The notes under the pieces: model-generated
The model's database searches: none
What the model was told of the DNA's origin: nothing
The model's input: the letters and a program-made list of their open reading frames with translations, nothing else
Source of the DNA: Kudoa neothunni
Lineage: Eukaryota > Animalia > Cnidaria
Assembly (NCBI GenBank): GCA_964304625.1
Contig: OZ199838.1
Span: 16,207,731-16,271,730 of the forward strand
Length of the DNA stretch: 64,000 bases
Reading direction: 5' to 3'
Position numbers and translations under genes: made by a program
Shown: positions 576 to 63,130 of the stretch, in pieces
Layout of the letters: every line of letters starts with the position of its first letter
Numbering within the stretch: the stretch's first letter is position 1

Positions 576-2550
576 ATGTTCTGTTGGATAATTTTCTCGA
601 TCATAATTTTTTACATTCCCAAAGTATTTGGAGAGCTTGATAAGAAAAAAGTAAATATTTTGTTTATTAATATCAATATCTAATTTTCATAGGAAGTTTT
701 GCTTTATATGTATTATGGTATTATCCAAATGGAATCGTATATATGTGAAATGGATAAAACTAAATTTTTCGGAGTAAACTGTACGTTCAAGAAACTACAT
801 AAATGCAGTAATATTTTAATTAAAAAATGGAGTGTTATTTTGATCAAAGGGATAACTGTTGTGTTGGATACTAATGTTGATCTTGAAAATGAATGCCTAA
901 AACAGTTTAACAAAGAATTCAGACTAATAAATACAAATGTATGGGTAATAGTAGCTGATGAAAATCTACGTAGCTCGTAATTATGTCAATCAAATATGGA
1001 CTTGTCTAATTTTCGTTTATAAAGTTTGAGAAGTAAATATTATGAAAATTATACTGATTTTGGAATTAATGTTCGCAACGTAACCATTGATGACAACAAT
1101 ATAACAATTTCCTATTGGAAACTTACAGAAAAAGGAGAAACTCTATTACAATATGTCGAATCTAATGAGTCACCGATACTAATCGGAAAGGTAAATTTCA
1201 AATTTATATCTTATAATTCTCATTCTATTTAGGGACATGAATCTTATACTCACGAGAGAGTAAATTATTTATTGAATAAATTTATTTTCTAATTTCATTT
1301 TTTAAATAAATATATGATAATTGTTTATTTTATAGGAATACAAAGATTGTGGATATATTCTAATCGATTACGATTTATTTTCACTCGGCTATCCCACAGA
1401 AAAGGACATAACAAACAATACAATAACTAGCTATATCTTTAATGGGAAAGAATTTAATTTTTTCTCAAAAAGTTTTGACAAAATGGGTTATAATAATTTG
1501 TTTTATAAACTAATTTATCAACTTATATTGGTAATTTTTTATATTTATTATTCTGTTTCATTTAATTTTGATACTTATTAGCTTGGAAAATATAACACCA
1601 TTCCGGGAAGTAATGTAATCACCATGGAATTTCCCTGTTATCATCTAAATACATCCATTACGTTTTTTCCCATTCAATATAAGAGTTGGATATCAAAATT
1701 AGAGGGCAGCCACGAAAAATTTTTGGAGCGAATTAATTTAACTGCCGGATATAGTTTTTTAGGATGCTTAGAGTTGATAAACTTAGTTACGTTTTTCCCA
1801 AATCATAGATATCCATGGAATAATAACATAGTTAATTTATTGGAAACGAAGCTTCCGAAGAAAGCTGGCACACCTTGTTTCGATGTAATAAATGTTATAA
1901 AATTGGAAACAAATTATAATTTAATCAATTACTAGGTTTATGGCTATGTATATAGTTTGATTAAGCATGATGATTACTATTCAATGGAATATTTAAATAA
2001 TACGCTAATTAAAAATTTACATGAATCCACATTAATAGTCTATGTAAATTGTCTTTTGAGGTAAAATTAAAAAAATTACATTAGAGGATTGTTGAAGCAA
2101 TGTATTTTCATGCACTGGTTTCCTATTTGTCGAACAGTGGTATTCATTACGGAGACAATTATATATTTAGATTTTATGTATTTTAATATTTTTTCTAAGT
2201 ATTTTATTAAATTATTCAACTCTAGAGCTATCAAAACGTGTGGCAGCCTGTATTACTAGAATATCTCACGATGAGTAATTTTATTAGTCGTAGTTAGATT
2301 TAATATTTATATTTTTCAAATATATAATTTAGAAAGCAACGAAATTATTCTAAGTACTGATAATATTAATGTAATACTGGAAAATCAAACAGGATCTGCA
2401 CAACATAGTCAAAATGAGAGAGTTCAGCGCTCAAAGTCAACGATTGTTATTCCAATTAGTGTTACATTGATATTAATTTTTATCGCAATATCAATCGGGG
2501 CATACATTTATTTTCAACGACCAAGTGATTTGCGCTATCAGACTAACTAA
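576..2550 (+). CDS. Array paralogue 1: type I membrane protein with divergent GDA1/CD39 (E-NTPDase)-like ectodomain, 11 exons, 496 aa
   Basis: Exons 576-650, 693-807, 850-976, 1025-1190, 1233-1259, 1336-1530, 1582-1884, 1936-2043, 2085-2177, 2226-2289 and 2333-2550, all GT-AG, sum to 1491 nt (497 codons including stop). Signal-like MFCWIIFSIIIFYIPKVFG; family motifs FGVNC, ECL, VIVADENLR, GYP, EFPC, YPW, PKKAG; TM IVIPISVTLILIFIAISIGAYIYF. Confidence 0.85.
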
Positions 2551-3171
2551 ATTATTTATTTAAATTACAAAATATAGATTTTCATTTCGTAAATTATATT
2601 TTTTATTATAAGTGCCATTTTATCATTTTGTTATCGGCATCAAAAATAATTATTTTCAATCTTCCTATCGTATTTTTAAAATACACTCAGTGACCGGGTT
2701 TAAATAATCCCTTAGGAACATGGGAAAATGTATGTGAAATTTGTAACGTCCAATTTTACGCATTTATTAACACCCGCATATAGTAATATAAGTAGCTATT
2801 TAATATAATTGAATATCATACATTTAAAAAAAATAATTAACTGTTTTCTCACCAAAAATTCTTCCAAATATTTGAAATATGACTTTCATCATTGCGATTA
2901 TGATTGAGCGATGTTTTTTGTCAAATATGGATAATTTTTTGACCTCATTTTAATAAATTCACAAATGAAGACAATAATCGATTTGTATTCAATCACTTCA
3001 AAAATTTGATTTGTGTTTTTTAAGGTACCATAGGGGTTCGATATTTAGGATACGTCTGGTGCATTCTATCAACAAATTTGACTGCTTTTGAGGAAATATT
3101 GAAGACGTATTTTATTATTTCATGTTTTGATTTGATTTTTTCTCTTTTAATTTAATTCTTTCGAACATTAA

Positions 3172-5970: not shown

Positions 5971-5991
5971 ATATATATATATATATATATA
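5971..5991. repeat. (AT)n microsatellite
   Basis: Direct reading. Confidence 0.9.
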
Positions 5992-6273: not shown

Positions 6274-6296
6274 TAACTAACTAACTAACTAACTAA
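6274..6296. repeat. (TAAC)n microsatellite
   Basis: taactaactaactaactaactaa. Confidence 0.9.
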
Positions 6297-7513: not shown

Positions 7514-9590
7514 ATGATGTTCTGGTTAGTGTGTCAGATGTTAATTGCTTATTTTCCATCATTTTTGAATTTTGATGAAGAATCTAAATTAGTTTGAATT
7601 ATTCATAAATTGCATGATCTTTATTATATTTTGTGTAGGAAATTATTCTCTATGTAGATAATGGAGAATTAAGTGTTAATTCATATATCTGCTATCAGCA
7701 CAATCCATCGTATTTTGGTGTTATTTGTGACGACTATTATTCTTATGATTGTTCTGGTAATCAATTATTTTAATTATTTTTTAAATAATTAGTTTAGAGT
7801 TCCTTGACGATGAATATGACAATATAATGGATCTTGAACAAGATTGTTTAACACCATTAGGTGATGAAATCGATCTCACAGATGCAAGTATAACGGTGTT
7901 GGTATCTGACGTAAATCTCAAATCTTCGTAATTAACATTATATATACTTTTCAATAATTGAATAATAATAATAAGTGTGTAATATGAATAAGTTAGAATG
8001 AGGAGCGAACACTACCCTGGTTACGAGAGTATAAAATCGAAAATACGTGAGATTTCAATCGATTATGAACTTATTAACCTACAATACCTAAAACTCACAC
8101 CATCGGAATTAATATTTAATTATTTCGCTGTGATCAACCTAGAAAATATAAATAAAATTAATGTAAAGTTGTTTGTAGCTGAATTTTCTCATTTATATTT
8201 TATTTAAGGAAGAGGAAGGATCCATTGTCTCAAGCGTAAATATATATTTTCCCTTTATAAAATCAAATAATTTTTTTAAATGAAAATTAATTAAATATTA
8301 AAGAGATATATTCAATTAAATTCATATAATTTGATGTATTATACAGTCTAGAAAAGACGATGGATTTATATCCTTCGAGGCGGATGTGGTAATGATAGGT
8401 TATCCTATAGAGAAAAATTCAAGAAACCGTCATGTTAATGTTTATACTGTCAATTTATATGAATATCATTTCTTTTCATTATATTCAACATTTTTTGTTT
8501 ATAAAAATGTTTTACCAATATTGATGTATAAGTATATGACCGTAATTTGATATAATGATAATATTTATCATTTATTTTATTATACTTTAAAGAATAATAA
8601 TGACATTGAAGAAATTACTATCGAATTTCCATGTTCGATAAAAGATGAAATCAAATCAATTACACGTGAACAATACAATGATTGGATATCTATGTTAGGG
8701 GGACAGCAGTATAGTTTTTCCGGGCGAATAAATATTAAAGCCGCGTTCAACTTTGATCAATGTTTCAATTTTATGTGGGAATTGTTGTTCAGATACAATA
8801 GTATCTACCCAAGGAATCTAAAAATAAATGAATTTGTTTCAATCGATTTCCCACCAAAAATTGGTGAAAATACATTTAACGTAATGCATCAAATACTATA
8901 ATACGCGTTTAAAAAAGTTACGATATTAATTATATTATAGGTTGTTATTAATGACGAAACAATTAGTTGGCCTCAAGAACCAACAAGATTTTTTGACTTA
9001 AAAAAAATAATAAACAGAGCTATAAGGAGATTATCATTAAATGTTGACGTAATTTATTATTAAATATTTAGTTTAATATACTTTTCTAGGAAATAGTGCA
9101 ACAGATCTATTATTATTCGACAATTTCATATATTTATGAAAAAGGATTAGAAAATCATAATGAATATTTATTTAGATTTGTTGTATCTGAAGATCTATCG
9201 AATAAAAAATATTTAATTTAATATTTTAGCAAGAAAAAGTGAATTGGGTAACAGGGGCTGTTCATATCCTTGCAAAGAATAAATATGACAATGGTATAAT
9301 GACATTAATTTGAAATCTTTAACTAATGCGAATCAGGCGAAGAGAATGCTTCGAAGTTTCAAAATCATGATAATAATTTGGAACAAAATCCAAAAGACAG
9401 TAACAATGATTACCAAGAGGCACAACATTATAAAGATGAAAATTCTGATCAGTCACAACAAACTAATGGAAAAATATCAAATACGGTTCTGTCGGTGTCG
9501 ATTGTTGTACCAATTGTGGCACTGATAATTGTTATATCTATTCTAACCATCGTCATCAAATATCGACGTCAAAATCGAGGAAACGATTAG
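7514..9590 (+). CDS. Array paralogue 2 (NTPDase-like type I membrane protein, 11 exons)
   Basis: Start MMFWLVCQMLIAYFPSFL. Same intron positions and phases as paralogue 1. Motifs FGVIC, VLVSD, LTPSELIFNYF, IGYP, EFPC, FDQC, FPPKIG, WVTGAV; TM VLSVSIVVPIVALIIVISILTIVI. Confidence 0.85.
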
Positions 9591-12520: not shown

Positions 12521-14507
12521 ATGTTATTCCATTTGATGTATATATGGTTTGTTGGCTATATTTATACGGAAATGAATTTTGACTCGGATCCGAGAACTGT
12601 TAGCTTTATTTTTAAATTTAAAAAATTTTTATATTCTTCAGGAAGTATTGGTTTATATAGAGAGTGATAAGTTCCATGTAAAGTCGTACAGCTGTTTTTT
12701 CAACGAATCCACCTACTTTGGTACCTTTTGTGATTCCACTTATGATTTAGAATGTCCAGGTAGAACATTATATGTTAAATTTTAGTATATAAATTTGTAT
12801 TAGACTATGAGAATTATGAATACGAAAGTGTAACTTACCTTGAAGAAGATTGTATTAAACGCGTAGGAAGAATAGTGGATCTAACAGGTGCAAATGTAAC
12901 CGTGTTGGTCTCTGAAACAAAACTAACATCCTCGTACTCATATTTTTGATATTTTAAATGTGTTTGTAATAAAATGTTACGTAGAATGCGTAGTGATTAT
13001 TATTTAAATTGGGAAATGTACGGTCCAAAAGTTCGGAATATCGTCATGTGGGATGATTTATATATTCCAATATCATACCAAAAACTCTCATCGTCAGAAT
13101 TAATATTTAGTAATTTCGCTATGACTAACTCAATCAATTATCTTAATAGAGATGTATATTATTTCAATATATTTACTATTCTAATATTATTTTAGGAAAT
13201 GGAAAACTCTATCATCCCCAAGGTAAATATAATAATTTGCATATCTAATTCTAAAAGATTATACTTTCATTATAATTTTTATTAACTACAAATTAATATT
13301 TTATTTAATAAAGTCAGCTTTCGACAATGGATATATATCTTTTGAAAAAGATGTGTTCATGATTGGATATCCTACCAACAAAAATTCGAGAAACAACCAT
13401 ATTGATAGATTCACGGTCGGTTCAATTGAATATCATTCGTTTTCGATATATTCAACTCCAATCGTTGACAACATCTTTCCTAAATTAGTCTACAGTTTCG
13501 TAAAGGTAATCCGAAAAAATATTTTATATAAATTATTAAATATCTAGCTTCAGTCTTTTAAAGGTAACAAACCTATGGATGAAATTACCGTAGAATTTCC
13601 ATGCTCCATGATAAATGAAGTAATTACAATCATGTCCGAAGAATATAGAGAATGGATATCTAAATCCGAGGGAAGCAACGATATTTTCTTGGGACCAATT
13701 AATTTTGAATCCGCATACGATTTTGACAAATGTTTGAACTTCATAATAAATGTCTTGTTAGTTCCTAATGTTGATCATCCCTGGAATTCAATAAATAATG
13801 AATTTATTGCAATTCAATTCCCGCCTAAAACCGGAACAATAATTTTTGATGTATATTATTTTTTTAATTAAAAAATATTAATTAATTTCACTTAGACTTT
13901 TATAAATACTGAGATCATTGATTGGCCTTCAATACCTACAGATTTGTCGACCCTACATACATTAATAAACAATGCGATTGTTGAATCCTCAATGGGAACT
14001 AAGGTAATAAATTTTCATTAATTTAAGTTTAAGGCCATTTTAGGAAGTTGTGGATTTAATGTATAAGTATGCGTTAATTTCTCATGTATGTGAGAAAGGT
14101 TTAAATAATCAACAAGAATACCTATTTAGGTTTTATGTATTTGAAAATTAACTAAACATATAAATTACAATTGAATATTTTAGTCTGATCATTTGCCATG
14201 GGAAGTGGGATTTGTCAATATTCTAGCAAAGTCAAAGTTTGATAAAGGTAGAATACATTACTTTTTTTAAAAATTGATTTTATTAGAAATTGAAGCTAAA
14301 CAATTAATTAAAAATAAAAAAGATATGCGTGAAGCATCGCATAAAGGTAATGTTGAGAGTCCCGAATCTTCCCAAATGAGAGAATCGAATAATTCAAGCT
14401 TGACTTTGCTGGTCTCTATTCTTATATCCGTCATGATATTAATAATTGGAATCGCAATCATTACGTTCTATAAACTTCAACTCAGAAAAAATACAAAGGA
14501 TATATAA
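12521..14507 (+). CDS. Array paralogue 3 (NTPDase-like type I membrane protein, 11 exons)
   Basis: Start MLFHLMYIWFVGYIY. Motifs FGTFC, LSSSELIFSNFAMTNSINYL, GYISFEKDVFMIGYP, EFPC, FDKC, HPW, FPPKTG, WEVGF; TM LLVSILISVMILIIGIAIITFY. Confidence 0.85.
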
Positions 14508-21732: not shown

Positions 21733-23756
21733 ATGTCTGATATATGGATTTTTCTTGTCCTCTTTGTGTATGATTCCTCAATCTTATGTTTCGTTTTGAA
21801 AGAAAAGCTAGTATATATCGTTTGGATTTATTAATATATGTGTTATATTATGTAGGAGATCGTGCTTTTTGTAAATGATTCGAAATATCGAGGCACCGCG
21901 TACCTATGTATTGATTATGAGCCATTAGACTTTGGAGTGTATTGTGATAATATATTTGAAGTTGTTTGCACTAGTAGGAACGCATCTCAAAAAATATATT
22001 TTATTTAATTTTATAAAGATGATTACACCGATCAATTTAATGATTCGGCTGACCTTGAAAAGCAGTGCCTAAGACGCATAAGTCAGTATGTGAAAATGAC
22101 AGAAGGCAGTGTAACCGTTCTAATTGCTGATGATAATATAATCCCATCGTAATAAACTTATTTTTTAATTTAATTATAATATATAATAGAATGAAAATCA
22201 GTTATTACAACAAATGGAATAATTATGGTACTGAAATTCGGGATATTACGTTAAGTAATACACTTCTACCAATCTCATACGTAAAAATCACATCATCAAA
22301 TCTAATATTTTGTTATTTCGCCATGGCAAACGAGGTGAGTACTATTATTTTAAAATTAAATATTATTGATATGTATTTGTAATGATAAAACTTTTTATTC
22401 TAGGAAGATGTCTTGTTTATTAAAAAGGTAATTTATTTATAAATATTTTTTTAAATAGTTATAAACTAATTTTTTTAATAATAATAATAATGATAATAAA
22501 TGGTACTTTGAGGTATTTAATAATCTAAGATCTAGCCAAAATACGACTTCGGATTTGTATTTTTGGATGCGGACGTATTTATGCTTGGATACCCCACGGC
22601 GACCAATTTCAATAATATAAACATAAATACATTTACACTTAATTCGAATGAACATAAGTTTTTTTCGATATATTCAATGCTCATGGGTCATAAGAATATC
22701 CTTCCTAAATTGGTTTATAAATATATAATTGTAAATTACTTGTTTTCTTTTTTTTATTGTGTTACTTTGTGATATATTTAGCTTAAAAAGTATCATGTCG
22801 AGAAACTCAGCGGTGAAATTACCATGGAATTCCCTTGTTCAAAAAATGATGAAACAATTACGATTACTTCTAAAGAATTCAGAATATGGGTAACCGGGTT
22901 GGACGGTGATAGTAGAAAATTTTTAGGACCCATAAAAATGGTGGCTGCATATGATTTATTAATTTGCTTTAATTTATTGAGGGAAGTTACGTTAATTTCT
23001 AATAGTACCCATCCATGGAATTTGGAAACTGAAAAATCTCTCTCCATTGAATTTCCACAAAAATATGGAAGCAATTACTTCGAAGTTGATCTCATAATAA
23101 AATTTTAATTCTAAAAATAAATTATATTTCTTCAGATATACTCGAATTCCGGTAAATTTAGTTGGGTCACAAAATCTATTGCATTTTCGGAGTTGCAATC
23201 TTTATTAAACGCTGAAATACAAAAATCTTCCTTTAATGTGAATGTAATTTTGTTAAAAATTATTAAGCCTTAATCTATTAATAGGAAGTTGTCGAACAAA
23301 TATATTATTATTTACTTATTTCCTATATTAATGACAAAGGTCTAGAAAATCATGTTAAATACACATTCATATTTTTGGTATTCGCAAACAATTCTAAAAT
23401 ATATATATTTATTTATTTAAGGATAATTATCTACACTGGGAAGAATGTTTTGTAAAGAATACTACAAAAATCAAATTCAATAATGGTATATTTTTTTATA
23501 TAATCATTATTAATAATATCATTTAGATAGGAAAAAATATTTAAAATCACGAGATAAAGATGACGCTAATAAAGGTCAAAATAAGCCACTTAATGAAATT
23601 AATGATAATTCACCTGAATCCAAAGAAAATAACCAATCTAAAATTTCCAACAAAATCCTGGTAGTTTCAATTATTGTTCCTACCTTGGCAGTAACAATAG
23701 GTATCACCGTTTCATTATATTTCACCTACGGACGCTCCAAATTTGAAAGATTATGA
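21733..23756 (+). CDS. Array paralogue 4 (NTPDase-like type I membrane protein, 11 exons)
   Basis: Start MSDIWIFLVLFVY. Motifs FGVYC, VLIADD, LGYP, EFPC, HPW, FPQKYG; TM ILVVSIIVPTLAVTIGITVSLYF; stop TGA ending 23756. The exon 4 donor appears shifted (see findings). Confidence 0.82.
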
Positions 23757-24630: not shown

Positions 24631-26251
24631 TTTTCCATCTAATTATCCGAAATATTGAAGTAAATGTTCGGGAGAACTTTGAAAAAAATCTATCGAGTAA
24701 ATATATTTTTATTGCATGAATATCATGTCTTCGTTTGAATCGTACTTGCATCATAATTATTTTCAATGATGTGTTCGAGTGATCTTAATAGTAATTACTC
24801 CGATGTCGAAATTTCATATTCATTTTCTTCCTTTCATGATTATTTATCGTTGGAAAAAAATTGATATTGATACAGATATACAACATAAGTCATTAATCCA
24901 CAAGAACGAAACGTAATGGTTAGAGCTTCGAAAAATCGAGGATATAGGGATTATTCTCTAATCCGAAAAGATTAAGTTAATGTATTAATAAATAGAGTGA
25001 TTCGTTCACATTGGATTTTGTAATCAAAATTCATTAATGCATTATTTTTTGGAATACACAATTTTATTTCTTTTAAAATATCAGCTAAATTACGTTACTA
25101 CATTATCTGTGTACGAACTTCGGCCGAGGTCGCATACAAAGTCTGAAATAAAGTCATTTCCTACAATTCGACCTGTTAATTCACTTCTTTTTAAAAGTTT
25201 TTTCATTTTTGATCTTATTACAAAAAATTACATTATGTAGTAAAATTCAGTTCAAAAAGAATAACCTATAAACTGAAAATAAATCTTCAGTCGTGTACAT
25301 TCGGATTTACGTGGAATCTCTGTTGTTGATAAATACATCAAAAAAATTATTATTTCTCTATAATTTTAACAACTTCGAAGTTGTTAAATGTTCAACGATT
25401 TTTTTTATTTATATCTATTAGTAATAAATTTATAAATGTTCAATCATAACTTCGTATTTAAAAAAACAGAACTTTCTGATTTATTCTATTCAAAATTATA
25501 AAAATAATGTTTCAATTTAACTATAACGTAAATTAATGTGTGTTTTAGTTTATAAATTTTTTCTGTTAATTTATTCATGATTAAAAAACTATTATAATAA
25601 TATTTGTTCCGAAATTCATACATGATAATTTAAAATTTATTTTATTAAGTTAACTTTTTATTTCTATCTATTACAGAACTAAAAATAAAAAATAATAATT
25701 TTTCAATTTGAATGAATTTTATAGTGGAATAATCGTCACAAATCAAAATATACGATTTATAAGCATTTTATATTAATTCGAACGTAGTTGTTACTAAGTA
25801 GTTCACATTTTTTTTACTTTTTTTAACAATACAAAAATGATGTAAAATTTAAATAAACATTTATTATCTTGTTATTGAATATATAGCAAAATATTACGTC
25901 ATATTTTAAAATCTACTTCAATATTTTTGTGTGGCTGAATGTTTCAAGAGGTATAAACTAATATAATTAGTTTACTGACAAGTATTAACTCTCAAAATGT
26001 TTGTAAAAATTAGTAATAACCACAAAACGTTGGAATCATAAAATCCTTAATAGTCTTCATTTCAAATATAATCACCTTCGTTTTTAAAAAAATTTCCTCG
26101 GCCCTCGATGTTTTAAAGGCCTAGTTATGGTCGATGAACCCACCCATCGTTGGCGTCTAGAACATGTGTTGCAAATAATATGAATGCTCGTCCTAATGTC
26201 TCTCCGTTTTATTACAATATATAATTGACATTTTCAGAATAATCTTTAATT

Positions 26252-29394: not shown

Positions 29395-31781
29395 ATGTCA
29401 CTTATACTGGTTTATTCAATGATTATTGCGTTATATCGAATAATGGTGGATACGCAAACAAACAATAAAAGGGTAGCTTACGTTTGTTGGTTGGTAATAC
29501 GTTTTATTTATCTAGTAATTTATAGGATGTCCTATTGTATCTGGAGAATGAAAAATTCCACATAAATTCGTATAATTGTTATTTAAATGATTCAACATAT
29601 TTTGGGGTGCGTTGTGATAGGTTAAAATCAACATATTGTGTTGGTAATATATTTAATTGAAATATTATCATTTGACGTTCACCAAAGATTTCAATAACAA
29701 TGATTATGTGAACGCTTTTGATCTTGAAAATCAATGTTTAAAAGATTTCTTTAATACGATCGATCCCACAGACGGTCGCGTAACCGTACTTGTAGCTGAT
29801 GAAACAGTAACATCTTCGTAATCTATCATATCGAATTAGTATTTTAATTCATTATTAAATTTTATAGAATGCAAAGTCACTATTATACGAACTGGAAATA
29901 TTTTGGGTTCGGGATTCGCTACATTATCGTAAACGATGTACGTCTTCCTGTGTCTTATTATAAGATCGCCAACCTGAATATAATGTTTTGTTATTTCATC
30001 GTGGAGAACGAAATAGATCACATTACTCTGGATGTATATCAATAAAATTGAAAAAAATAAAATTCATTATAATTTTAGGGAAAGAATGAATATGAAATTA
30101 AACAAGTAATTGAATTAATTGATAATTATCAACTTTATAAAAATGCGAAATGATAATATTAAGTTGTTTTGCAAATATATCATCAAATAAAAATATTTAT
30201 ATATAAAAGACGGCCTACCAATTTGGTTACGTTTACTTGGATCCAGAGGTGTTTATGCTTGGATATCCCACAAATACACAGTCGACAAATACGAATATAT
30301 ACAAATACACCCTTAACTCGATTGATCATCAATTTTTTTCAATATATTTAAAATCAATGGGATATAAAAACATCTTGCCAAAATTAGTCTATAAAAATAT
30401 ATTGGTAACTTTATAATAATTTTTATTGAAAATTAATATTTTTTAATATTTTTAGCTTGATAGATATAAGGAAGTACGACCCGGGGGTGAAATTCACATG
30501 GAATTTCCATGTGCTACTTCTGACGAAACAATAACACTTACTTCAGTTGAATTCCAAGAATGGATATCCACATTAGATGAAGATAAAAAAAAGTTTTTGG
30601 GGCCCATAAAATTACTGGCTAAGTACGATTTTACAAACTGTTTAAGCTTAATGGGAGACGTGCTATATTCGAATGTTTCCCATCCTTGGAATTCGGAAGC
30701 ACAATACTTTTTATCCTTCGAATTTCCTCCGAAAAGTGGAATAAAATCATTAGACGTATATATTTAACAATTTTACCATAAATTTAACTTAATGTTAATT
30801 GAAGGTGATTGCGAGCGATGAGGAAATCAATTGGCCCACCAAACCGGTCACGTTACTTGCATTACGACATGCATTAATCATATCAATGATAGAGAATTCG
30901 TTTAACGTTAATGTAGTTTTTTATGAAATTAAGCATGGAATATTTACTTTTAGGAGCTCTTAGAACGGTTTTATTATTTTTTCATTATTTCATATATTAA
31001 TAATAATGTTAATGGAAAAAAGGAGGGATACACATTCAGATTTATTGTATATGATATTTCAATATAATGTAAATATAGTTTAACATTTTAGAGTAAAACG
31101 ACTCCATGGCAGAAATGCATGCTCCAAAACATCACCAAATATAACATTAATAGTAATATTTTTATAAATTTTGTGGATAAAGTTAATTTATGTATAGGGG
31201 ATGATCCAATAAATGGTGCTAGTGTTAATATTGACGATTACCCTCTGATCGATAGTGATATTACAGAGGATTCGACTCGAACTCTTACTGATAAAACAGA
31301 GAGCTCGTCTCAAGACAACGGTGATACGTTATTGAATCCTACGCACACCAGTAGTAACGATAATGTTGGTGAAGCCTCTCAGACGGATAATGAAAATCTG
31401 GACGGTTATTTGCAAACCGAGAGTGCTACTTTCGAGGATTCTACTCATATTCATAATGAAAAAATAGAAGAATCCTCTCAAAATGATAATGATAATATAG
31501 ATAACGGTATACAAAACGGCAATGAAAATAATAATGAAGCTTCCTCTCAAAATGATAATGATAATATCGATAACGGTATACAGAACGGTAATGAATACAA
31601 TAATGACGCTTCCTCACAAAATAATACTGAGCATACTACTATAAAAATTGTGGAAAAATATAACAAAACAATCTTGGTGGTTTCGATTGTCGTTCCACTA
31701 ATGATTTTGATAATCGTCATTGCAATTATTATTTTATTTTTCAAATTTCGAACAAAAACGTACGACGAATACTATATATGA
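29395..31781 (+). CDS. Array paralogue 5 (NTPDase-like type I membrane protein with extended N/D/E/S-rich stalk)
   Basis: Start MSLILVYSMIIALY. Motifs FGVRC, VLVADE, LGYP, EFPC, FTNC, HPW, FPPKSG; long last exon with 69-bp repeats; TM ILVVSIVVPLMILIIVIAIIILFF; tail KTYDEYYI. Confidence 0.85.
31467..31625 (+). repeat. Coding tandem repeat, 2.3 x 69 bp (EESSQNDNDNIDNGIQNGNENNN) in the paralogue 5 stalk
   Basis: Units start at 31467, 31536 and 31605. Confidence 0.9.
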
Positions 31782-38103: not shown

Positions 38104-40136
38104 ATGCCGCTCTTATTGGTTTTATCACTTTTTGTATCATACTTGGCAACGATAATGAATCTCCAATCGAATAATACATTAGTAACTCCCATAACAAACT
38201 ATTAATATTTCTATAAATTAATACATAGGAGCTATTTCTTCATATTGAGGATAAGAATTTCAAAGCTGAATTATACCTATGTTACCTTAAGGGGTCTAAT
38301 TATTTTGGTGTGAATTGTGATAATTTAAAATCAGCAAATTGTGCAGGTAAAAACAGTGGACTCAATATTTTTTAATTTTTCTTCCAAAGAGTTTAATAAA
38401 AATGATTATGAAAACGCCCATAATCTTGAAAATCATTGTTTAAGAAATCTAAGTGTTGATGTCGATCTCACAGACGTTGAAGTAACTGTACTGGTGGCTG
38501 ATGAGGAGTTCGATTCTGCGTAAATAATCACTGTAATTATACATTTTTATTATAATTGATATTATATAGGTTTCAAAGTGAATATTACTTAAATTGGAAA
38601 AATTTCGGTTCAAGAATTCGTGAAGTCAGCCTCAATGATATTACACTACCGATATCATATTATAATCTCACCAATTCGAAGATAATATTTGGTTATTTTG
38701 CCCTAAGAAACGAAATGAATTATTTTACATGGAAAGTAATCTACACGATTATCACCATGTTATACAATATTATAATTTTTTTAGGAAAGTGAAGAATCAT
38801 ATGATTATGATAGTGAAGTAATTGAAATATTTAACATTAATGTTGAAATAAAAATTTAAAAACTTATAATGCCTTTATGCATAAAAGATTTAAATATCAT
38901 TAAATTTTTTATTTTATACACAGCGACCAAACTTTGATGTTGGATTCGTATCTTTGGATTCGAAGAAGTTTATGCTTGGATATCCAACAGAATCTACTTC
39001 GAAAAATATACACATAAATAAATATACTATTAATTCTACTGAACACAAATTATTTACAATATTTTCCAATTCAATAAGTTTCGAAAATATTCTTCCCAAA
39101 TTAATCTACCGATATATAATAGTAGATTAATATTTATTTATTAATTCTGTGTAATTTTACATTGTTCAGCTAGGAAAATATGAAGATAAACAATCTGACG
39201 GTGAAATTGAAATAAAATTTCCTTGTGCACGATCAAATGAAAGAATAACTATTCAATCTGATGAATTCAAAGTATGGATATCCAAATTAGATGGGGATAA
39301 CAGAAAATTTTTAAAACCTATTAATTTGGTGGCTGACTTTCAATTATCGTATTGTATATTTTTCATGGGAGATGTACTATTGAGATCAAATGTTGATAAT
39401 CCATGGAATTCTGATACAGAGGACTTTTTCTCGATCCAATTTCCTCCAAAAAATGGAACCAAATCGTTTGATGTATTAATATAATCTTGATATTAAAATC
39501 TATGTTAACACAAGATTTGGGATAATAATGAAAAAAGTTTTTGGCCAAAAACCCCAGTCACATTATTAGGTTTGCGTCATGCTTTAGTTAGGGCACTAAC
39601 AAAGGAATCCTTCAAACTTAACGTAATACATCGGATAATTGTTTATTATTTACTTTCTTGTAGGAACTTCTCGAGCGGATATATTATTTTACCTTTATTT
39701 CATATATTAATGATAAGGTTTCAGACAATAAAGAAGAATACACTTTCAGATTTTTTGTATTATTTACAAATTCTAAATTGACCAATATTATTTTGATCAT
39801 TTTAGACTGATGATTTAGCATGGGAGGAATTTTTTGTCAAAAACATCACCATGATTAAACTCGATAAAAGTATGGTTTTTTGATATAAGTATATTATAAA
39901 AAATTATAGAAGCTAATTCCGACAATAGGAACACTACAAATTCTATTTTTGATAAATTTGGTTTACTAAAAAATCCAAATCAGGGGGATTCCGATTCATC
40001 CTCCGATAGTGACTCCAAAAAAAAGAAGATAATTTTGGTTGTGTCTATTGTTATTCTAATATTGATAGCAACAGTTTGCGTTGTTATATTTTTAATTTAC
40101 AAATATCAATATTCGGTATATGAAAGTACATTATAG
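38104..40136 (+). CDS. Array paralogue 6 (NTPDase-like type I membrane protein, 11 exons)
   Basis: Start MPLLLVLSLFVSYLATIM. Motifs FGVNC, VLVADE, LGYP, KFPC, NPW, FPPKNG; TM IILVVSIVILILIATVCVVIFLIY; tail YQYSVYESTL. Confidence 0.85.
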
Positions 40137-43676: not shown

Positions 43677-45881
43677 ATGTTATTTTTGATTTACTCAATT
43701 ATAATTGGATCTTTGAACTATATATTGAGCAAAGAGTTGAAAACGCCTACAGTAAAATAATTTATTTCTCAATTTTTTTTTATTTTTTTATAGGAATTAC
43801 TGGTTTATTTCAACAACGACAACTTAATATTCAAGCCATATTTGTGTAATCAAGAAGAAACAAAAATATTTGGAGTGCATTGTGAAGAGGAGACAGAATA
43901 TATTTGTTACGGTATAAGAATTATTAAATCACGGATTACTATATAAATAATTAAGATTTTTCAAGCAGAGGAAATTCAAGAATAATTAACGAAAATAAAT
44001 GCTTCCTAGAATTTATTGAAGAACGATCGCCGAATATAACTAATGTTACCTTCGCATCAGTTGATAACTTATTAGAATTAAAGTGATGAGTTTGTGTTTT
44101 TTGTGTATAAAATTCAAATTATTGCATTAAGAATACAGAATGGATATTATGATTTGACGCAAGAACAAATAAATGACCGCCATGTAAACATTTCGGGGTT
44201 GCCACTGCAAATACATTATTCCGTTTTGGAAACATCTGAAAAAATATTTTTTAATTATTTAAAATCTAATGAAAAATTTTCAAGATTTAAAACGGTAACT
44301 TAGTGAATTCTAACATATATCTTACCTCAACAATTTCCTTTACCTTTAGAAAGACGGTACGATGGTAACTTTAAGGGTAATTAAAAAGATAATTATATAT
44401 TCTTTAATATTCAAATTTCGGTAAATAAATAAATTTTACATAGATGAATAAGAAAAATGGATATATTTCTATTGATGAATATGCCACTTTGATTGGATAT
44501 TCGACTGATTATGACCCTCAAAACGATGATATTACCATGTTTAGGGTAAAATCACAGGATTATCCATTCTTTTCAAAATACATAAAATTGGGTTATAAGG
44601 ATATTGTTCCAATTCTAATATACAAAAACATAATGGTAACCGAAAATTATTTATTCCATAAATATAAAAAATATTATTCATTAGAGTGGAGATTTATAAA
44701 ACATATGTTGATAAACCATATCAAATTTTATGGATTCACCTTGCTCCCTTATTAACACAACCATAAATATTGATTATAATGAGAAACATAATAGTTGGAT
44801 AACGAATAAGAAAGTTATTAATGAATTGTTTTTTGAGCCAATAAATATCGTTTCCAAATATGATTTTGTGAAATGTCTGGATATAATCAAGGATTGTGTA
44901 TTGGTATCAAATGAAGAAAATCCTTGGAATGATCAAACGAAGAATTTGATTCAAAGGGCGTTTCCAATGAAAAATGGTGGAAATTATATTGATGTAAATT
45001 AATAATCGATCAAATCCTTTCATTTATTAAAATATTATGATTGATTGATTAATTAGTTAATTATAGATGTATAACTTCAAGTCAAAATCCCAAAATGACT
45101 TTTTACACTAGCTCAATTTCATCATTACAAGAACTAGTAAATGTTTCAAATCATTATAAAAATAGTGGCGAGCATGTATCTTCATTGACATTAAATGAGG
45201 CCACTGAATACTTCTACGAAACGGCTGCTAGGATGTATTACTTGGCCATTCTCAACTTTTTTTCTTCTGGAGAACATATTCACAACAAAAATTACGTCTA
45301 TAAGTTTAATGTATTTTAATTATTAATAATTATATTTATTGTTATTTCAGAAGCTCAACCCAAATTGGCAGACTGAATTTATTAGTTATCACACAATGTT
45401 GAGATTATTTGAAGGTAAATATGTTTATTTGTTATTAAATATAAAAATTTTATAAGGAGCGGAAAAAATCAGAAAATCTATGGATAATGATCATGAAAAT
45501 GGCGTAAAAATAAATACTAACGCATGTGGCCTAATAAATAACATTTAGTTTGGAACTGATGAATCGTCTACTCCTAATGATGTAAGTATTGGAGACCAAC
45601 AAAAAGCTGATGGAAAACCGGATTCTCATAAAAATAATGAGGACTCACCACCAAATTCTGGAAATGACAACGAACAAATAAAAAATGATGAAGAGGATAA
45701 GGATTTTTCTGAAGAAAATACTTCAAAGTTGACAACCAAATCACCCAACCAAAGATATAAATCAAAGTCTTCGTTAGTGGCCGCGATTGTTATCCCACTT
45801 GCGATAATTTTGATTTTATTAATTATTGGAGTATTTGCTTTTACGAGGAACAAAAAGGCTGGTAACCTCCGCTTCAACTAA
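43677..45881 (+). CDS. Array paralogue 7 (subfamily B); frameshifted in this sequence, either a pseudogene or assembly errors
   Basis: Start MLFLIYSIIIGSLNYIL. Motifs FGVHC, GYISIDEY, YPFFSK, DSPC, FVKC, NPW, FPMKNG; TM LVAAIVIPLAIILILLIIGVFAF. Frame breaks at ~44690-44730 and ~45090-45104, both in or near homopolymers. Confidence 0.75.
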
Positions 45882-50995: not shown

Positions 50996-53936
50996 ATGAT
51001 GTTGAAATTTTTGTTTTGTTCAATTTTTATTGGGTATTTTCTAAATATTCTAAATGAAGAATTTAAAGACCAACGAGTAAGGTATATATAAAACAATTGA
51101 CGAAATAATTTGTTGAAGAACTTGTTGGTTTATCTCAACCACAGCCAATTTGTTGTTAAATATTATTCGTGCGATACAGTAAAATCAAAAATTTTTGGTA
51201 TAGAATGTACTGAAAAGAATAAATATACTTGTTCAGGTATAAGATTTTCCCTATCTGCAAAATATATTAATATATAAATAGATTTAAAAAATAAAATTAT
51301 TAATTCAAGGATTGAAATTGAAGACGAATGTCTCATTGAGTTTTTTAATGAATATCAACTTCCACCAACTTACATTATTTTTGCTGTACCCGTGGAAACA
51401 TTAGGCTCAACGTAATTTGATAGAAATTAAAATATATTGATTATTAATTTATTAAGATCAAATGATGCACATGCTATTTGGTCCGAAGACATCGAAGATC
51501 GTATGTTATCATATACTGGCAAAAACTATCCAATACATTATTCAAAAATGACATCATCAGAAAAAATATTCTATAAATATTTAAAATCAAATGGAAAATC
51601 ATCCCAAGCTGAATCAGTAAAATAGATTTATTTATTCATAATAATTATATTCTAGCTGGATGGATTAAAGTATAATGAATGGGTATATTATTATATTCAT
51701 TTCTTCTGACATATAATAACGCACAGTTATTTTATCATTTAAATTAATTACAAATATAATTTTCACCTATAAATTAATGTAAGCTAAGATAAAAATATTT
51801 TAGACATATGAGGACAGTGGTTATATCTCTATTGATGAAGATGAAATTTCGATTGGATATTTGTCAGAAATCGATCCCCAAAATCCAGATATTATTACTT
51901 ATAGAGCCAAAAAGGAGGATTATCCATTCTTTTCAAAATATATAACAGATCTTGGGTATAACGATATAGTAGCAATTCTGATATATTATTTAATAAATGT
52001 AATCAAACGGAATATTGGTTCGCAATATGTGACCTATTTTTGTTAGGAAGGAGAATATAATATTACCCCGAGTAATGTCGTCGTTATCGAATTTCCTTGC
52101 TCAGTAACAAATGCAACGCTCAGTATTGCTGACGTAAAATATATTAATCAGCAATTCCAAAGTTTAATCACTAAAGAATTATTTTTTGGAACATTAAATA
52201 TTATTGCAAAATATAATTTTCCTCGTTGTGTAAAAATTATTACTGATGCATTGTTTACCCCAAATGAAGACCATCCATGGAACGAAAAAACAAAAAAATT
52301 AATTCAGACTGGATTTCCTAAAAAAGTCGGCACAAAAACCTTCAATGTATTTAATTAATTATGCAATTACCTGAAGAAAATCGAATAAATAATTTATATG
52401 TTCTTTAATTTTAGCTATATAATTTCAAGGCGAAATCAACAACTAAAGATGGCTTTCATTCATTGCAATCCATACGAATAATAACTAATATTTCTAAAAA
52501 ATATCAAACGAGAGACGAACATATATTGTCTTTCCAACCTGATGAAACCAATAATCATTTTTTTGAGGTGGTTGAACGGATGTATTATTACGCTCTAATT
52601 TACATTATTTCTACTGAAATATCAATGGATGGGTATGGATACGCCTATAAGATTCACGTTTATAATATTTTCTTAATAACATGTTATATCATTTTATTAA
52701 AGGAAAATAATATTGAATGGGATTCTGAATTTGTTAGTTATATCACTATGATGAGATTTTTTGAAGGTACAAATATTTTTCTATTTTATAAATTATGATA
52801 AAAATTTATAAGACGCCGAAGAACTCTTGAAACCAACCAAAAATGATGAAGAACAAACACATATCGTCGATATAGATCAAAATAGTGAGACAGCAGATAA
52901 TATTAATGATTCCAATGAATCTACTCAAGAAGTTGATGAATCCAGTGAATCTACTCAAGAAGTTAGCGAATCCAATGAGTCTACTCAAGAAGTTGATGAA
53001 TCCGGTGAATCTACTCAAGAAGTTAGCGAATCCAATGAGTCTACTCAAGAAGTTGATGAATCCAGTGAATCTACTCAAGAAGTTAGCGAATCCAATGAGT
53101 CTACTCAAGAAGTTGATGAATCCAGTGAATCTACTCAAGAAGTTGATGAATCCAGTGAATCTACTCAAGAAGTTAGCGAATCCAATGAGTCTACTCAAGA
53201 AGTTGATGAATCCAGTGAATCTACTCAAGAAGTTAGCGAATCCAATGAGTCTACTCAAGAAGTTGATGAATCCAGTGAATCTACTCAAGAAGTTAGCGAA
53301 TCCAATGAGTCTACTCAAGAAGTTGATGAATCCAGTGAATCTACTCAAGAAGTTAGCGAATCCAATGAGTCTACTCAAGAAGTTGATGAATCCAGTGAAT
53401 CTACTCAAGAAGTTAGCGAATCCAATGAGTCTACTCAAGAAGTTGATGAATCCGGTGAATCTACTCAAGAAGTTAGCGAATCCAATGAGTCTACTCAAGA
53501 AGTTGATGAATCCAGTGAATCTACTCAAGAAGTTAGCGAATCCAATGAGTCTACTCAAGAAGTTGATGAATCCAGTGAATCTACTCAAGAAGTTGATAAA
53601 TCCAGTGAGGTTCCCCAAAAATCAAACGATTCCATCGAGCCTAATCATAACGATGATGATTTGAAGGATGCTCTTCCAGTGGATGGAGGTGAAAGTAACC
53701 CCCCTCAAAACAATGAGGAAACCGAGAGTGAAATACAACCGGATGAGAGCAATGAAGAAACATCGGATGATAGTAGCTCCGTAGCCACAACCATAAGCGC
53801 TAGAGAAAAATCGAATATAAATTCTACAATAGTGACGCTAATTGTTGTTCCCATCTTGGTATTAATAGTTTTGGTTTCAATTGGAATATATATCAAAATG
53901 AAAAAGAAGAAATCGAATAATACTGACATAGTCTGA
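50996..53936 (+). CDS. Array paralogue 8 (subfamily B, 10 exons) with ~230-aa E/S-rich tandem-repeat stalk
   Basis: Start MMLKFLFCSIFIGYFLNIL. Motifs FGIEC, GYISIDED, YPFFSK, EFPC, FPRC, HPW, FPKKVG; last exon corresponds to ORF 52827-53936; TM IVTLIVVPILVLIVLVSIGIYI. Confidence 0.87.
52908..53609 (+). repeat. Coding tandem repeat, ~23 x 30 bp (ESTQEVDESS / ESTQEVSESN) arranged as a 60-bp dimer
   Basis: Near-identical units ctactcaagaagttgatgaatccagtgaat and ctactcaagaagttagcgaatccaatgagt alternate. Confidence 0.97.
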
Positions 53937-56665: not shown

Positions 56666-58888
56666 ATACCAGAATCGGTGGTACCTTTGTACGCACGCGT
56701 CAAAAAATGTCGCGAATTAAACAAAATTCTGTTTTAGGAGCGCGCAGTCGACCACCGGGCACAATTATACACCCAATTCGTGTACCGCGTGATTTATTTT
56801 TTTAAGCTCGCGCATTTATCATCGAACTCATTGCCTTAATACCTACTGAGGTTGCTAATCACACGCCGCGCCCGCTAACGCCAATCTAATTACAGACCGC
56901 CTGGGCACACTATTAATTTATATATGTCATTTTGTGTAACTTTTTTGGATATGCAGCAAATTACTATTTTGATATAATAACGAATCATGAAGTATAACGT
57001 AAAAAAAATAATCGAAAATTAACGCTTTCAAAAATATTTTCCTAATACATTATATATGTGGATTAAAACCATATGAATTTTCGTCAATTATAACAAACGT
57101 ATTTCAAAAGTAATTATTTAAATTATCATATATAGAATATAGTTCATTAATTAAGTTTAAAAGTCAAGTCGTCCCAATTGTCTTAACATTTCCAAAAAGG
57201 GATCTTCCTTGTTTTTCAGATATTTTCGTTTGAAAATATATTTATAGAAATAACTAAGTCAAAATTTAATAATTGATCAATTATCTATATAAAAACCTTG
57301 AGTACAAGTATTTTCTCGTTCCATTAGACGGTAACGAAAGTTTCAACTGACGCCAAATTGATTCAATAGTGTTAGTGTGTGTGCCGTCTTTCGCAACATA
57401 GCACTCACTATGGTTTACCACGCGATGTTGATAACCTAGTGAGGACGACTTTTTATATACTTTCGCTGCATCGGTATGTATAGTGGTACCTAAATACAGT
57501 TATATTGTTTTTATTTAAGATAAAAACCGGGTAAAATGTATTTCTTGATCAATGGTATTAGAGTTTGGTGGTTTCTTTTATTGACTGGGACGGCAATAAT
57601 ACTGTGAGATCCTCGCTCTATACCACCAAATACCCATTGTCCTTCGATAGTTCGGTCGCGATTATACTTGCGTTTCCCGAATTTCGATTCGTCTATTTCG
57701 ACGATTTTACCAGGACCTAACGAAATATTAATTATAAATAGAAAATATAATTACCTCCAATCTTTGGGAATCCATTTGGAGAATTTCTCCACACAGGAAC
57801 CTAAATTTTTTTTTCCAGTCCACAATCCACAAATGAGTTAAAGGAGGAAATCCTTAAATCGGATATTATGAATTTATTCCTACATTCATGGATCCAATAA
57901 TAAATAAGTAATAAGATCGTCTAAAACTATTATATATAATGTTGAGTAAATCAAAATACTTTAATTTTTAACTTTGAAAATTCGAAAATAGAATTCTTAC
58001 GAAGAGAAATAAATTTCCGACATTTTTTATTGTTACATCTCCAAGCAACTTTATCTATAATCATTTTTGTTTCTTTCACCAGTTTCACATTTGGTACATA
58101 CGCCGGCTCTATCTTTTAACAAATTATAAAGTTTGTCGTTGTTCGAGCACAACTTGTATATTTTGTTAGTGTTGAAACTTTTACTTAAATATATTATTCC
58201 GCGATATAATATATAATAAATTGGTTCTAGTAATTCCATAATTTATATAGCATTGTTCTTAAGGATTGAGCATTTAATTGGTTAAATGCTTTTAATCAAT
58301 TATTAACTTTATTATTAATATGAAGTAGCTTTAAATTTGAAATATAAATCATGTTATTTCTGCCGTGGCTTTATGAACTCATATATTAATAATCACATCA
58401 AATATAATTTTCGTAAAATTATTAATCGGGGTCCAAATAGCATAAATAAGACGTTATATATGTACATATATATATTAATTAACTACCTATGATTTCATTA
58501 CATAAATTCTAATAATGTACACTAATAAATCTAAGTACTATTGTAGTAAATCTCATATTATTCTTGTTTTTATTATAATAATTCTAAGTTGCAATCGCAT
58601 TATAATTTATTGGTTTCGTATTTAAACAACATTTAAGTATTGCTGATTTACAATAACCATGTTTAGTTCTTAAAATTAATGATTTACGATTGGTGATTAG
58701 AGTCTTTGAGGATTTTGCCATCAGTATTGTTGACATGTAACCCTAAAAAAATTCCTCAAACTAAAATAGCCGTGAAAATATTGTTTGAAACATAAACGAA
58801 TGCGCCAGCTACAGAATATCAGGCGATTTCTCGCTTTAGAGCGAACCTGATGGGCGCATGCGCACATGAGTACCACCGATTCTGATAT
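56666..58888. repeat. ~35-bp inverted repeats bracketing the Merlin transposase
   Basis: 56666-56701 ATACCAGAATCGGTGGTACCTTTGTACGCACGCGTC versus the reverse complement of ~58853-58888 ATATCAGAATCGGTGGTACTCATGTGCGCATGCGCC. Confidence 0.75.
57157..58239 (-). mobile_element. Merlin (ISXO2/IS1595-like) DDE transposase gene with four short introns; some frameshifts
   Basis: Spliced reading gives CTKC..WRCNN(K)[81 protein letters not shown] and [15 protein letters not shown]. GT-AG introns at 57959-57921, 57754-57717, 57527-57490 and 57296-57254. Confidence 0.9.
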
Positions 58889-61149: not shown

Positions 61150-63130
61150 ATGTTGAGTATTTTCATTTATTCCATTTTCATTGGCTATTTCCATAATGTC
61201 ATAAATGAAAACGCTTTAAAATCGACCGTAAAATGTATTATATACAAAAAAAATAATTTATATTTAAAGGAAATATTGGGTTACCTCAACTACAGTAATT
61301 TCATCCTTAAACGTTTTTCTTGTTATTCAGAGGATGCCATAAGTTTTGGCGTCAAATGTTCCGAACAACAAGAATACATCTGCTCAGGTATGAAATCTTA
61401 AAATATTTTTTAATTTTAATTTATAATCAATAAGATTTCACTGATATAAGTTCAAACTCAAGAGTATTACTCGAAAACATGTGCCTTATAGATTATTTCG
61501 ATCATAATATAATGTCAGAAGCTACCGTTACTTTCTTATTACCCGATAAAACATTAGAATCAAGGTATTATGCTAACTATTGATAACGAGTAGTTTCAAC
61601 TCTTTTTGGACACAGTTTGCAATGGGGATATGACTTTTGGTACGATAATGTAGTAGAGCGTAGCATAACAACCGAAAAAAATAATTTTCCAATTTATTAT
61701 TCGAAAATGTCCTCATCAGGAAAAATATTCTATCAATATTTGGAATCCAATATAAATCAGTTCGGCGATCCAGTAACTATTCCGCTATGTTAGCAACAAT
61801 TATTTTTCATTTAAATATATTCTAGTTACTAGGATCATCCGGTAAAAATATGGTAATTTAATATTTCATATAATTTGTTCACTCCAAATCCACATATTTA
61901 TTTAAAAGAGATTATAAAATTAAACATGAAACGAAATTTACATTCAGCTGTATTATAATTTTTTAGATAAATGATGATCATGGTTATATCGCTATTGACA
62001 AAGATGGAATTTCTGTCGGTTATATGACCGAAGGTAATCCTTACAATCCAAAAATAAGCACATACAACGACATAAATCATACTTATTCCTTCTACTCAAA
62101 AATTGTACACGGTTTTCAAGAAGATGAAATCATCCCAATTCTAATATTTTATTTGATAGATGTGATTGAAAAATATTTTTGTAACGTAATATAGTGCTGG
62201 TTTTATAGATCGGAAAATATGCCACCAATAAGAATGGTGATGCTTATATCGCTTTTCCTTGTTCTACAGTAAGTGCAAATCTAAGGCTTTCAGATAGTAA
62301 ATACATCTATCGGCATTTCCAAAGGGAAACTAAAACAACAAAATTTTTTGAATCAATTAAAATTGTCTCCGCTTATAATTTCGATGAATGTGTGAAATTA
62401 ATGAAGGATTCATTGTTGAAAAAAGGTGGTAAGTCATATCCGTGGAGTGCAATAACCGACCAAATGCTTAAAACTGATTTTCCACCAAAAAAGGGAAGCA
62501 GACAATTCGATGTAAAAATCCCTTTGATATTATCCAAATAGTTTATTTATATCTTGGTTAATTGTAGATATACAACTATAAACACAGTTTTGAAATTGAT
62601 AATTACTACCGCCCCTTGGAATCCATTAGATCTTTAACCTCTATATTCAACAGGGAGCCAACTTATGTCAAACCCTTATCGTCGATTTCACCAGATGAAG
62701 CCATTCAAATTCTGAATTACGTGGTTAAAAGGACGTTTGCCTATGTTATCGCCGCCTTCTTTTCTGAATCAGAGTCAATATATGGCAATGATTACGTCTT
62801 TAAGACTCATGTATACAGACAACTTTATAGGAAATACTTAATAATTTTTATTATAGGAAAATAAAATTGGTTGGCAATCACAATTTATTAGTAATCAAAC
62901 CAGTATACGATACTATTTCCATAGTAGATATAATTTCTCCTTAATGCATTGTTAAAAATCTGATAGACCGTAATAAAAACTTCGGCCCCCAAAGCGATAA
63001 TTTGGGAGAAAAAAAAGGATCAGATATAAGGGAAAATAGGGGCTACACAGATTTCATTGAAGATTTCCAAAGGTCTTCACAAGATAGGAAACAGAGATTG
63101 AGATACAGTGACAAAATAACAGACGAATAA
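61150..63130 (+). CDS. Array paralogue 9 (subfamily B, 10 exons), lacking the C-terminal TM; predicted secreted
   Basis: Start MLSIFIYSIFIGYFH (alternative in-frame ATG at 61123). Motifs FGVKC, GYIAIDKD, AFPC, FDEC, YPW, FPPKKG. The last exon from 62967 is hydrophilic and ends ...RLRYSDKITDE* at 63130. Confidence 0.8.

Follow-up and report, generated by a model that had tools for sequence, protein, structure and literature searches.

Kudoa neothunni, a myxozoan parasite of fish muscle, carries a row of neighboring genes for putative surface proteins that resemble the ATP-splitting enzyme CD39. Are these genes truly descended from an NTPDase, have they lost its activity, and if so, what might they do? 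We examined a 64,000-nucleotide stretch of the genome (GCA_964304625.1, contig OZ199838.1, positions 16,207,731 to 16,271,730 of the forward strand; hereafter, the window). The original prediction was that the window encodes nine diversified surface proteins with a catalytically dead NTPDase fold. We confirmed the observation, with some corrections, and the interpretation is supported as far as ancestry and loss of the catalytic set are concerned. A role as a receptor, adhesin, or antigen at the host interface is still inference, as neither expression nor a ligand has been shown.

Nine paralogous genes and their relatives in the genome

Spliced gene models were built to check reading frames and features. 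The window contains the following genes and related features, in window coordinates:

576..2550 (+), g1: 11 exons, 491 aa; signal peptide, pseudo-NTPDase ectodomain, 36-aa stalk, TM, and short tail
1233..1259 (+), 27-nt micro-exon 5 of g1, between ACR3 and ACR4 (ACRs are the apyrase-conserved regions)
7514..9590 (+), g2: 11 exons, 506 aa; keeps D-N-G near ACR1 and W-V-T-G at ACR5
12521..14507 (+), g3: 11 exons, 500 aa
13548..13850 (+), exon 7 of g3 (PC...FxxC)
21733..23756 (+), g4: 11 exons, 495 aa; exon 4 is 7 codons shorter (donor at 22335)
29395..31781 (+), g5: 11 exons, 619 aa; 162-aa acidic Ser/Thr/Asn stalk with a 69-nt repeat
30210..30404 (+), exon 6 of g5 (ACR4 region)
38104..40136 (+), g6: 11 exons, 505 aa
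43677..45881 (+), g7: about 565 aa; frame breaks in the window sequence near 44693-44725 and 45100
45176..45217 (+), 14 codons in g7 (also 52523-52564 in g8 and 62676-62717 in g9) where g1-g6 have a 40-41-nt intron
50996..53936 (+), g8: 10 exons, 813 aa; 339-aa stalk
52906..53608 (+), 30-nt (10-aa, Glu/Ser/Thr-rich) tandem repeat, 23.4 copies, in the g8 stalk
61150..63130 (+), g9: 10 exons, 493 aa; no TM in the simple model (secreted, or 3' end mis-modeled)
63174..63516 (+), two possible further exons (63174-63226 and 63271-63516, the second hydrophobic) behind typical-size GT-AG introns; these could not be joined to g9 with the donors seen

Every modeled intron is GT-AG. The intron phases are 0,1,2,0,0,0,0,0,0,1 in g1-g6, while g7-g9 lack intron 8 and carry the 14 extra codons there. 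Exon 2 is 118 nt in 8 of 9 genes, and micro-exon 5 is 24-33 nt in all nine, with no shared sequence. Six Cys are invariant: three in exon 2, one in exon 3, and two in exon 7. Exon 1 is hydrophobic in all nine genes, and a C-terminal TM is present in eight. We rejected nested twin introns in the long intron 5, because g3's has no second GT, and we also rejected intronization at intron 8.

The frame breaks in g7 might suggest a pseudogene. However, short-read contigs of the same sample differ from the window sequence by 1-letter indels at 44693, 44725, and 45100, at the breaks, so these are assembly errors.

Pairwise identity among the nine proteins is 25-50%, and dN/dS is 0.32-0.63 in all 36 pairs. 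(dS is about 0.8-2.3, which is near saturation, so dN/dS is rough.) The groups g4-g6 and g7-g9 mostly stay nearest neighbors across exons, so there is no wholesale shuffling. The array also runs beyond the window, with 21 copies between 16.157 and 16.353 Mb of the contig, and the superfamily has about 87 loci or more genome-wide. A few superfamily loci elsewhere have stops. If most loci are intact, the family is about 1.6% of the roughly 5,300 predicted proteins (PMC12239612), beside only two genes with intact motifs. This is in a lineage that has lost most ancestral genes.

Relationship to NTPDases

To test for NTPDase ancestry, we used structure searches with models of two exons, transitive profile comparisons, and comparison of gene structures. 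All searches and folds were done exon by exon. The AF2 model of g5 exon 6 (pLDDT 88) retrieved only NTPDases or apyrases at Foldseek ranks 1-48 (best E 0.0099, TMq 0.58-0.71), and the first unrelated hit had a probability of 0.20. VIA tied rat and Legionella NTPDase1 at the top (Z 3.4) and placed 64 of 65 residues on 3zx0 205-270 (rat NTPDase1). For the model of g3 exon 7 (pLDDT 81), the top Atlas match was ENTPD8 (TM 0.52, against 0.38 for the next best). This exon aligns to rat NTPDase1 264-336, and the only two rows with Z>=2 on a second look were NTPDases. Note that no Foldseek hit reached E 0.001 and that VIA Z values are low because the models are fragments. With the exon 7 model, Foldseek gave no significant hit, although NTPDase1 chains had the highest TM, and the wide VIA search missed the match.

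Profile comparisons link the family to ENTPD4/7 in two steps. For exon 7, the family matched intermediates at E 2e-11, and the intermediates matched ENTPD4/7 at E 9e-7. For exon 6, the corresponding values were 4e-8 and 0.006, and the match lands on ACR4. (Two primate rows and rows under 500 aa were left out of the ENTPD4/7 alignment.)

The genome also contains an NTPDase1-type gene with all five ACRs intact (L046, contig C1 at about 884,070-885,849, minus strand). All 8 of its introns (phases 0,1,2,0,0,0,0,0) have counterparts of the same phase in the window family, although intron 8 is absent from g7-g9. Gly6/Gly18 and Trp6 lie at the same distance from the introns. Direct sequence similarity to this gene is significant only for exon 7 (p 0.002). 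The profiles of exons 2-4 were not significant. The fold of this N-terminal part (domain I) is supported only by intron position, Cys, and motif order.

Other searches were less informative. Pfam found no GDA1_CD39 match in any window exon tested, but this was an exon-by-exon search, and even the intact gene stays below the cut-off when searched in this way. PDB sequence searches with family profiles, a word-based homolog search with the exon 7 profile, and an Atlas search by features gave nothing. A search of 1.84 billion representatives gave one true relative, which is from marine metagenomes and 47% identical to one paralog, and two chance hits. No homolog from annotated myxozoan proteomes was detected in these searches, which does not show absence.

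Catalytic residues in the family

We then counted the residues at each catalytic position across family members, using introns or conserved residues to anchor the register. At ACR1, the intron-anchored register has Asp in 0 of 26 members. The register is uncertain by one residue: if shifted by one, it has Asp in 6, Asn in 6, and Glu in 5 of 26, and D-x-G is found in g2 only among the nine. The Ser/Thr run that follows is lost. At ACR2 (T-A/G-G-x-R), Thr is replaced by Pro, Ala, or Ser, Gly is replaced by Asp in 16 of 26, and Arg is found in 0 of 26. At ACR3, the catalytic Glu is present in 1 of 27 members (g1), with Lys in 12. The Glu or Asp one place earlier (20 of 27) may be a helix cap. At ACR4 (DxGG), with the register fixed by Gly6/Gly18, 0 of 29 members keep the Asp or either Gly, and the first Gly is replaced by Asp or Glu in 20 of 29. 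The ACR2 and ACR4 motifs are gone in all nine window genes, and no copy keeps more than one of the ACR1-4 elements.

These counts support the loss of the catalytic set but correct the original prediction in three ways. First, it stated that the catalytic Glu is lost in every copy, but g1 has Glu at that register. Second, it stated that the DxG phosphate loops are lost in every copy, but g2 may keep one at ACR1. Third, it matched ACR5 (WTLG) to WVTG or WEVG, but these come from g2 and g3 only. The other seven genes keep the Trp, at the same distance from the intron, but not the Gly.

Possible roles and known systems

We propose, with moderate confidence, that the nine genes are part of a large expansion in Kudoa of a cell-surface NTPDase1/CD39-type gene into catalytically dead paralogs that form a non-catalytic, single-pass surface binding repertoire. 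The predicted proteins have variable stalks and tails of about 8-14 residues. We infer that the two-lobed scaffold is kept but that the phosphate-binding loops are filled with larger and often acidic side chains, so that nucleotides are neither bound productively nor cleaved. Each paralog would then show a different surface, at a different height above the membrane, and bind a non-nucleotide partner (host protein, matrix, or the parasite's own cells). The family would be a stable, subfunctionalized adhesion or recognition repertoire with local hot spots of change. This remains a hypothesis: there are no expression data (two RNA runs gave 0 and 1 reads on the window) and no ligand. It is nevertheless a concrete, testable candidate for how Kudoa attaches to, recognizes, or hides in fish muscle. 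The intact enzyme, the Cys-rich intermediates, and the six-Cys window subfamily also form a graded series for studying how an enzyme becomes a binding protein.

A possible but less likely alternative is that the dead scaffold serves mainly as a changing surface, a variant-antigen or decoy coat with copies expressed one or a few at a time to escape fish antibodies. The size of the family, the tandem cluster, the 1-19 N-glycosylation sequons, and the mucin-like stalks are consistent with this, although the surface location is only predicted. Furthermore, in the 96%-identical twins just beyond the window (loci L011 and L013), 15 of 16 non-synonymous codon changes fall in two patches, while exons 4 and 6 are identical. 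This pair has a dN/dS of 1.1. This patchy divergence fits immune selection as well, but the patches could be gene-conversion tracts. Antigenic variation is reported in myxozoans without a known mechanism (bioRxiv 10.64898/2026.02.11.705288). On the other hand, the paralogs are old and under purifying selection, other recent pairs give dN/dS of 0.3-0.55, and we saw no sign of an expression site or of wholesale mosaicism. A bolder reading, which is possible but less likely than not, is that about 90 pseudo-NTPDases form a switching surface coat or host-recognition system. This would be, to our search, the first GDA1/CD39 fold converted wholesale into variable non-catalytic receptors, and a molecular basis for myxozoan antigenic variation or for tissue and host choice.

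It is unlikely that the family is still part of purinergic biology, whether as nucleotide-binding sinks, slow or altered-specificity phosphohydrolases, or regulatory partners of the one intact surface NTPDase. An intact paralog with the same topology does exist, the ACR5 Trp is kept in all nine genes, g1 and g2 have the exceptions noted above, and parasite NTPDases are linked to adhesion as well as hydrolysis (PMC8630654). However, both DxG aspartates interact with the metal cofactor in all productive complexes (PMC12489842), the ACR4 Asp and glycines are gone, and about 87 divergent regulators of one enzyme is hard to explain. Finally, decaying duplicates without function, or an unrelated family with a chance resemblance to CD39, are largely refuted despite the lack of Pfam hits to single exons and of transcripts, because all nine frames and splice sites are intact once the g7 assembly errors are set aside, dN/dS is below 1, and the structure and profile links hold.

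No paper that we found describes a dead-NTPDase family in any organism. ENTPD5/mt-PCPH is a catalytically inactive NTPDase (PMC3829800), but it is a single truncated oncogenic mutant, not a conserved multigene family. Sphaerospora molnari, another myxozoan, has expanded lineage-specific membrane proteins (VSP-, RIFIN/STEVOR-, and ETRAMP-like families) that are proposed to act in immune evasion or attachment (bioRxiv 10.64898/2026.02.11.705288). Their sequences are unrelated, and that paper does not mention CD39 or apyrase.

The cell-surface E-NTPDases 1/2/3/8 (CD39 group; PF01150) share with the window family the predicted fold of the ACR4 region and of the PC...C region, the order of the five ACR positions, the ACR5 Trp, two Cys pairs, the ectodomain size, and the C-terminal TM. 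The window family differs in the loss of the ACR1-4 catalytic residues (with the small exceptions in g1 and g2), in having an apparent signal peptide instead of the N-terminal TM (the CD39 group has two membrane spans; PMC5803232), in the added micro-exon and stalk, and in having about 87 copies instead of a few. The intact Kudoa gene L046 is the best candidate for the progenitor lineage, although the exon 7 tree does not resolve its place. It shares the intron skeleton, a 166-nt exon 4, the Gly6/Gly18 and Trp6 spacing, and a signal peptide plus C-terminal TM with the window family. In contrast, it keeps DAGSTGT, GTGGLR, ETEAEY, DIGGSSLQ, and WTLG, has more Cys, and has no micro-exon or stalk exon.

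The nine genes and the extent of the family

The window (C1:16,207,731-16,271,730) is part of a 40.26-Mb, four-contig, AT-rich genome. The published assembly of the myxozoan Kudoa neothunni, with 40.2 Mb, three chromosomes, introns of about 49 bp, 5,316 predicted proteins, and too few RNA reads for annotation (PMC12239612), fits this description, and this is the likely species. Using single exons as tblastn queries, we found nine copies, all on the + strand, which we number g1 to g9. We built gene models by hand, and in these models every intron is GT-AG and there is one series of phases, 0,1,2,0,0,0,0,0,0,1. The spliced models were used to check frame and features, while searches and folds were run exon by exon. 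The predicted products are 491-813 aa, exon 1 is hydrophobic, and six cysteines are invariant. Eight of the genes end in a stalk of 36-339 residues, a TM, and a tail of about 8-14 residues, while g9 lacks a TM in the simple model. By eye, several of the short tails of g1, g5, g6, and g8 carry Tyr motifs or end in hydrophobic residues (..STL, ..DIV, ..YYI), which are possible sorting or PDZ-type signals.

Over seven exon classes, the copies are 25-50% identical, with dN/dS of 0.32-0.63 (by a simple counting method that is near saturation). The reading frame of g7 is broken in the window sequence, but contigs from two short-read runs of the same sample differ by one letter at 44693, 44725, and 45100, which are at the breaks, so g7 is most likely intact. 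Two RNA runs under the same species label gave 0 and 1 reads, so expression is untested and the functions discussed below are inferred from sequence and predicted structure. Other features of the window are as follows:

45176-45217, 52523-52564, and 62676-62717: 14 codons that replace intron 8 in g7-g9
8236-8346: an example of intron 5, which follows a 24-33-nt micro-exon and in all nine genes is 67-121 nt, as compared to about 45 nt for most other introns; its length is unexplained, but it is not a nested intron
22335-22403: exon 4 of g4 must end at a donor 7 codons upstream; the homologous donor position reads TT
57157-58239 (-), 33800-34820 (-), 36137-36916 (-), 26243-26476 (+), and 27192-27456 (-): transposon pieces between the genes, namely ISXO2/Merlin (Pfam E 4e-12), piggyBac-like (PF13843, E 0.006), and others (mariner-like etc.) that were identified only by eye
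14722-14820 and 32559-32735: weak tblastn matches to family exons (E 0.03-0.3), which may be relics or may be due to chance

To estimate the size of the family, we searched the genome with a profile of exon 7. This identified 33 loci, of which 21 lie in C1:16.157-16.353 Mb. Two rounds of iteration added 54 more distant loci at E<=0.001, on C1-C3, for a total of about 87. This is a lower bound, and it includes a few loci with stops. The added tier of degenerate NTPDase-like genes keeps more CD39-like cysteines and motifs such as F-x-C-x-G and H-P-C. Among 27 of these and weaker candidates whose sequences we obtained, none shows intact ACR motifs, although L059, L065, and L066 keep a GIVEMG ACR4-like start. 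The copy just before the window (L021, C1 16.2026-16.2045 Mb) has about 1.4 kb between exons 6 and 7 instead of about 50 nt, perhaps because of an insertion. Outside of this genome, the only relative that we found among 1.84 billion representatives is a fragment from marine metagenomes (L035/L036) with a matching layout of exons 3, 4, 6, and 7. It is at best 47% identical to any paralogue in this genome (L010) and is probably from another Kudoa-like species.

We also built an exon 7 tree, but this was a quick tree on 118 columns, and most of its forks are open. The genes in which 14 codons replace intron 8 form one group (support 93) that is nested among the split genes, and the outgroups L032 and L046 (an intact gene described below) have the intron, so the intron was lost or exonised rather than gained. 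The stretch in g7 starts with GTA and ends with TAC, but its sister L017 does not start with GT.

Predicted folds and an intact relative

Pfam and PDB sequence searches with exons from the window failed; the evidence for the fold comes from predicted structures of two exons, computed from alignments that contained no intact apyrase, and from profile links. The model of g5 exon 6 (pLDDT 88; four strands and a helix) retrieves only NTPDases and apyrases in Foldseek ranks 1-48, with a best E of 0.0099, and the first unrelated chain has a probability of 0.20. In VIA, it aligns nearly end to end with residues 205-270 of rat NTPDase1, which is the ACR4 region (Z 3.4, tied with an unrelated chain). 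For the model of g3 exon 7 (pLDDT 81), the best Atlas match is ENTPD8 (TM 0.52, versus 0.38 for the next best), and it lands on residues 264-336 of rat NTPDase1 (Z 2.4), although the wide VIA search missed this match. By sequence, the family's exon 7 matches the intermediate tier at E 2e-11, and that tier matches 105 ENTPD4/7 proteins at E 9e-7. For exon 6, the corresponding steps have E of 4e-8 and 0.006, and the latter lands on the ACR4 motif. The tier's best PDB sequence hit is NTPDase1 (E 0.057). Each of these tests alone is modest, but they agree in family and in position. Structural support is limited to these two exons and does not extend to domain I (exons 2-4).

A weak hit led us to an intact relative. 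The genome has two intact apyrases:

C1 about 884,070-885,849 (-): L046, a nine-exon NTPDase1-type gene with DAGSTGT, GTGGLR, ETEAEY, DIGGSSLQ, and WTLG (all five ACRs), a signal peptide, and a C-terminal TM
C2 7,278,507-7,279,569 (+): L001, of the ENTPD4/7 type

Exon 2 of L046 scores E 3e-4 against Pfam PF01150, but a genome-wide PF01150 search scores the gene only at E 0.02 because its exons are short. Its eight introns have phases 0,1,2,0,0,0,0,0 and lie where the family's introns do. Its exon 4 is 166 nt, as in g1, g2, g5, and g6. Gly6 and Gly18 of the ACR4 exon and Trp6 of the last ectodomain exon are at the same distance from the intron as they are in the family. The intermediate profiles, which were built without L046, score its exon 7 at 28.6 bits (the maximum from 2,000 shuffles was 13.1) and its exon 6 at p 0.001. 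The family adds a stalk exon and, between ACR3 and ACR4, the 24-33-nt micro-exon, which is of unrelated sequence.

Catalytic residues and possible functions

The five ACRs define the NTPDase family (PMC8630654), and both DxG aspartates interact with the metal cofactor in productive NTPDase complexes (PMC12489842). We used the intact gene to fix the register of these motifs. In ACR4, Asp is present in 0 of 29 members and neither Gly is kept; the first Gly is replaced by Asp/Glu in 20 of 29. In ACR2, Arg is present in 0 of 26 members, and Asp replaces Gly in 16. The position of the probably catalytic Glu has Glu in 1 of 27 members (g1) and Lys in 12. The register of ACR1 is uncertain by one residue: in one register, no member has Asp, and in the other, g2 keeps D-N-G without the following Ser/Thr run. 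ACR5 keeps Trp in nine genes and Gly in two. No copy keeps more than one of the ACR1-4 elements. The original prediction that acidic residues replace loop glycines is right, but its claim that the DxG loops and the catalytic Glu are lost in every copy needs two exceptions (g1 and g2).

Overall, the results support NTPDase descent, loss of the catalytic set (with these exceptions), conserved frames and cysteines, and a predicted single-pass topology. We infer that the proteins do not perform hydrolysis, that they have an acidic cleft that should disfavour polyphosphates, and that they bind other partners at varying heights above the membrane, with tails that are too short to signal alone. The deep, purifying divergence and the mostly consistent neighbours across exons favour stable, specialised binding proteins, but we consider this only about as likely as not. 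A role as variant antigens remains possible because of the copy number and because of L011 and L013 (C1 16.279 and 16.291 Mb), near-identical twins whose coding differences are in two patches: the start of exon 3, where 8 of 8 changed codons are non-synonymous, and exon 8/9, where 7 of 10 are. These two explanations can both be true. A residual purinergic role is less likely than either.

Among the papers that we searched, we found no NTPDase or CD39 family in Kudoa and no dead-NTPDase expansion elsewhere. Our analysis adds structure-level support for the genes in the window, an intact progenitor-like gene, the count of about 87 loci, and the correction to g7. The proteins descend from the GDA1/CD39 family but fail the ACR1-4 tests for active membership in it, and in kind they appear to resemble other parasite pseudoenzyme repertoires.
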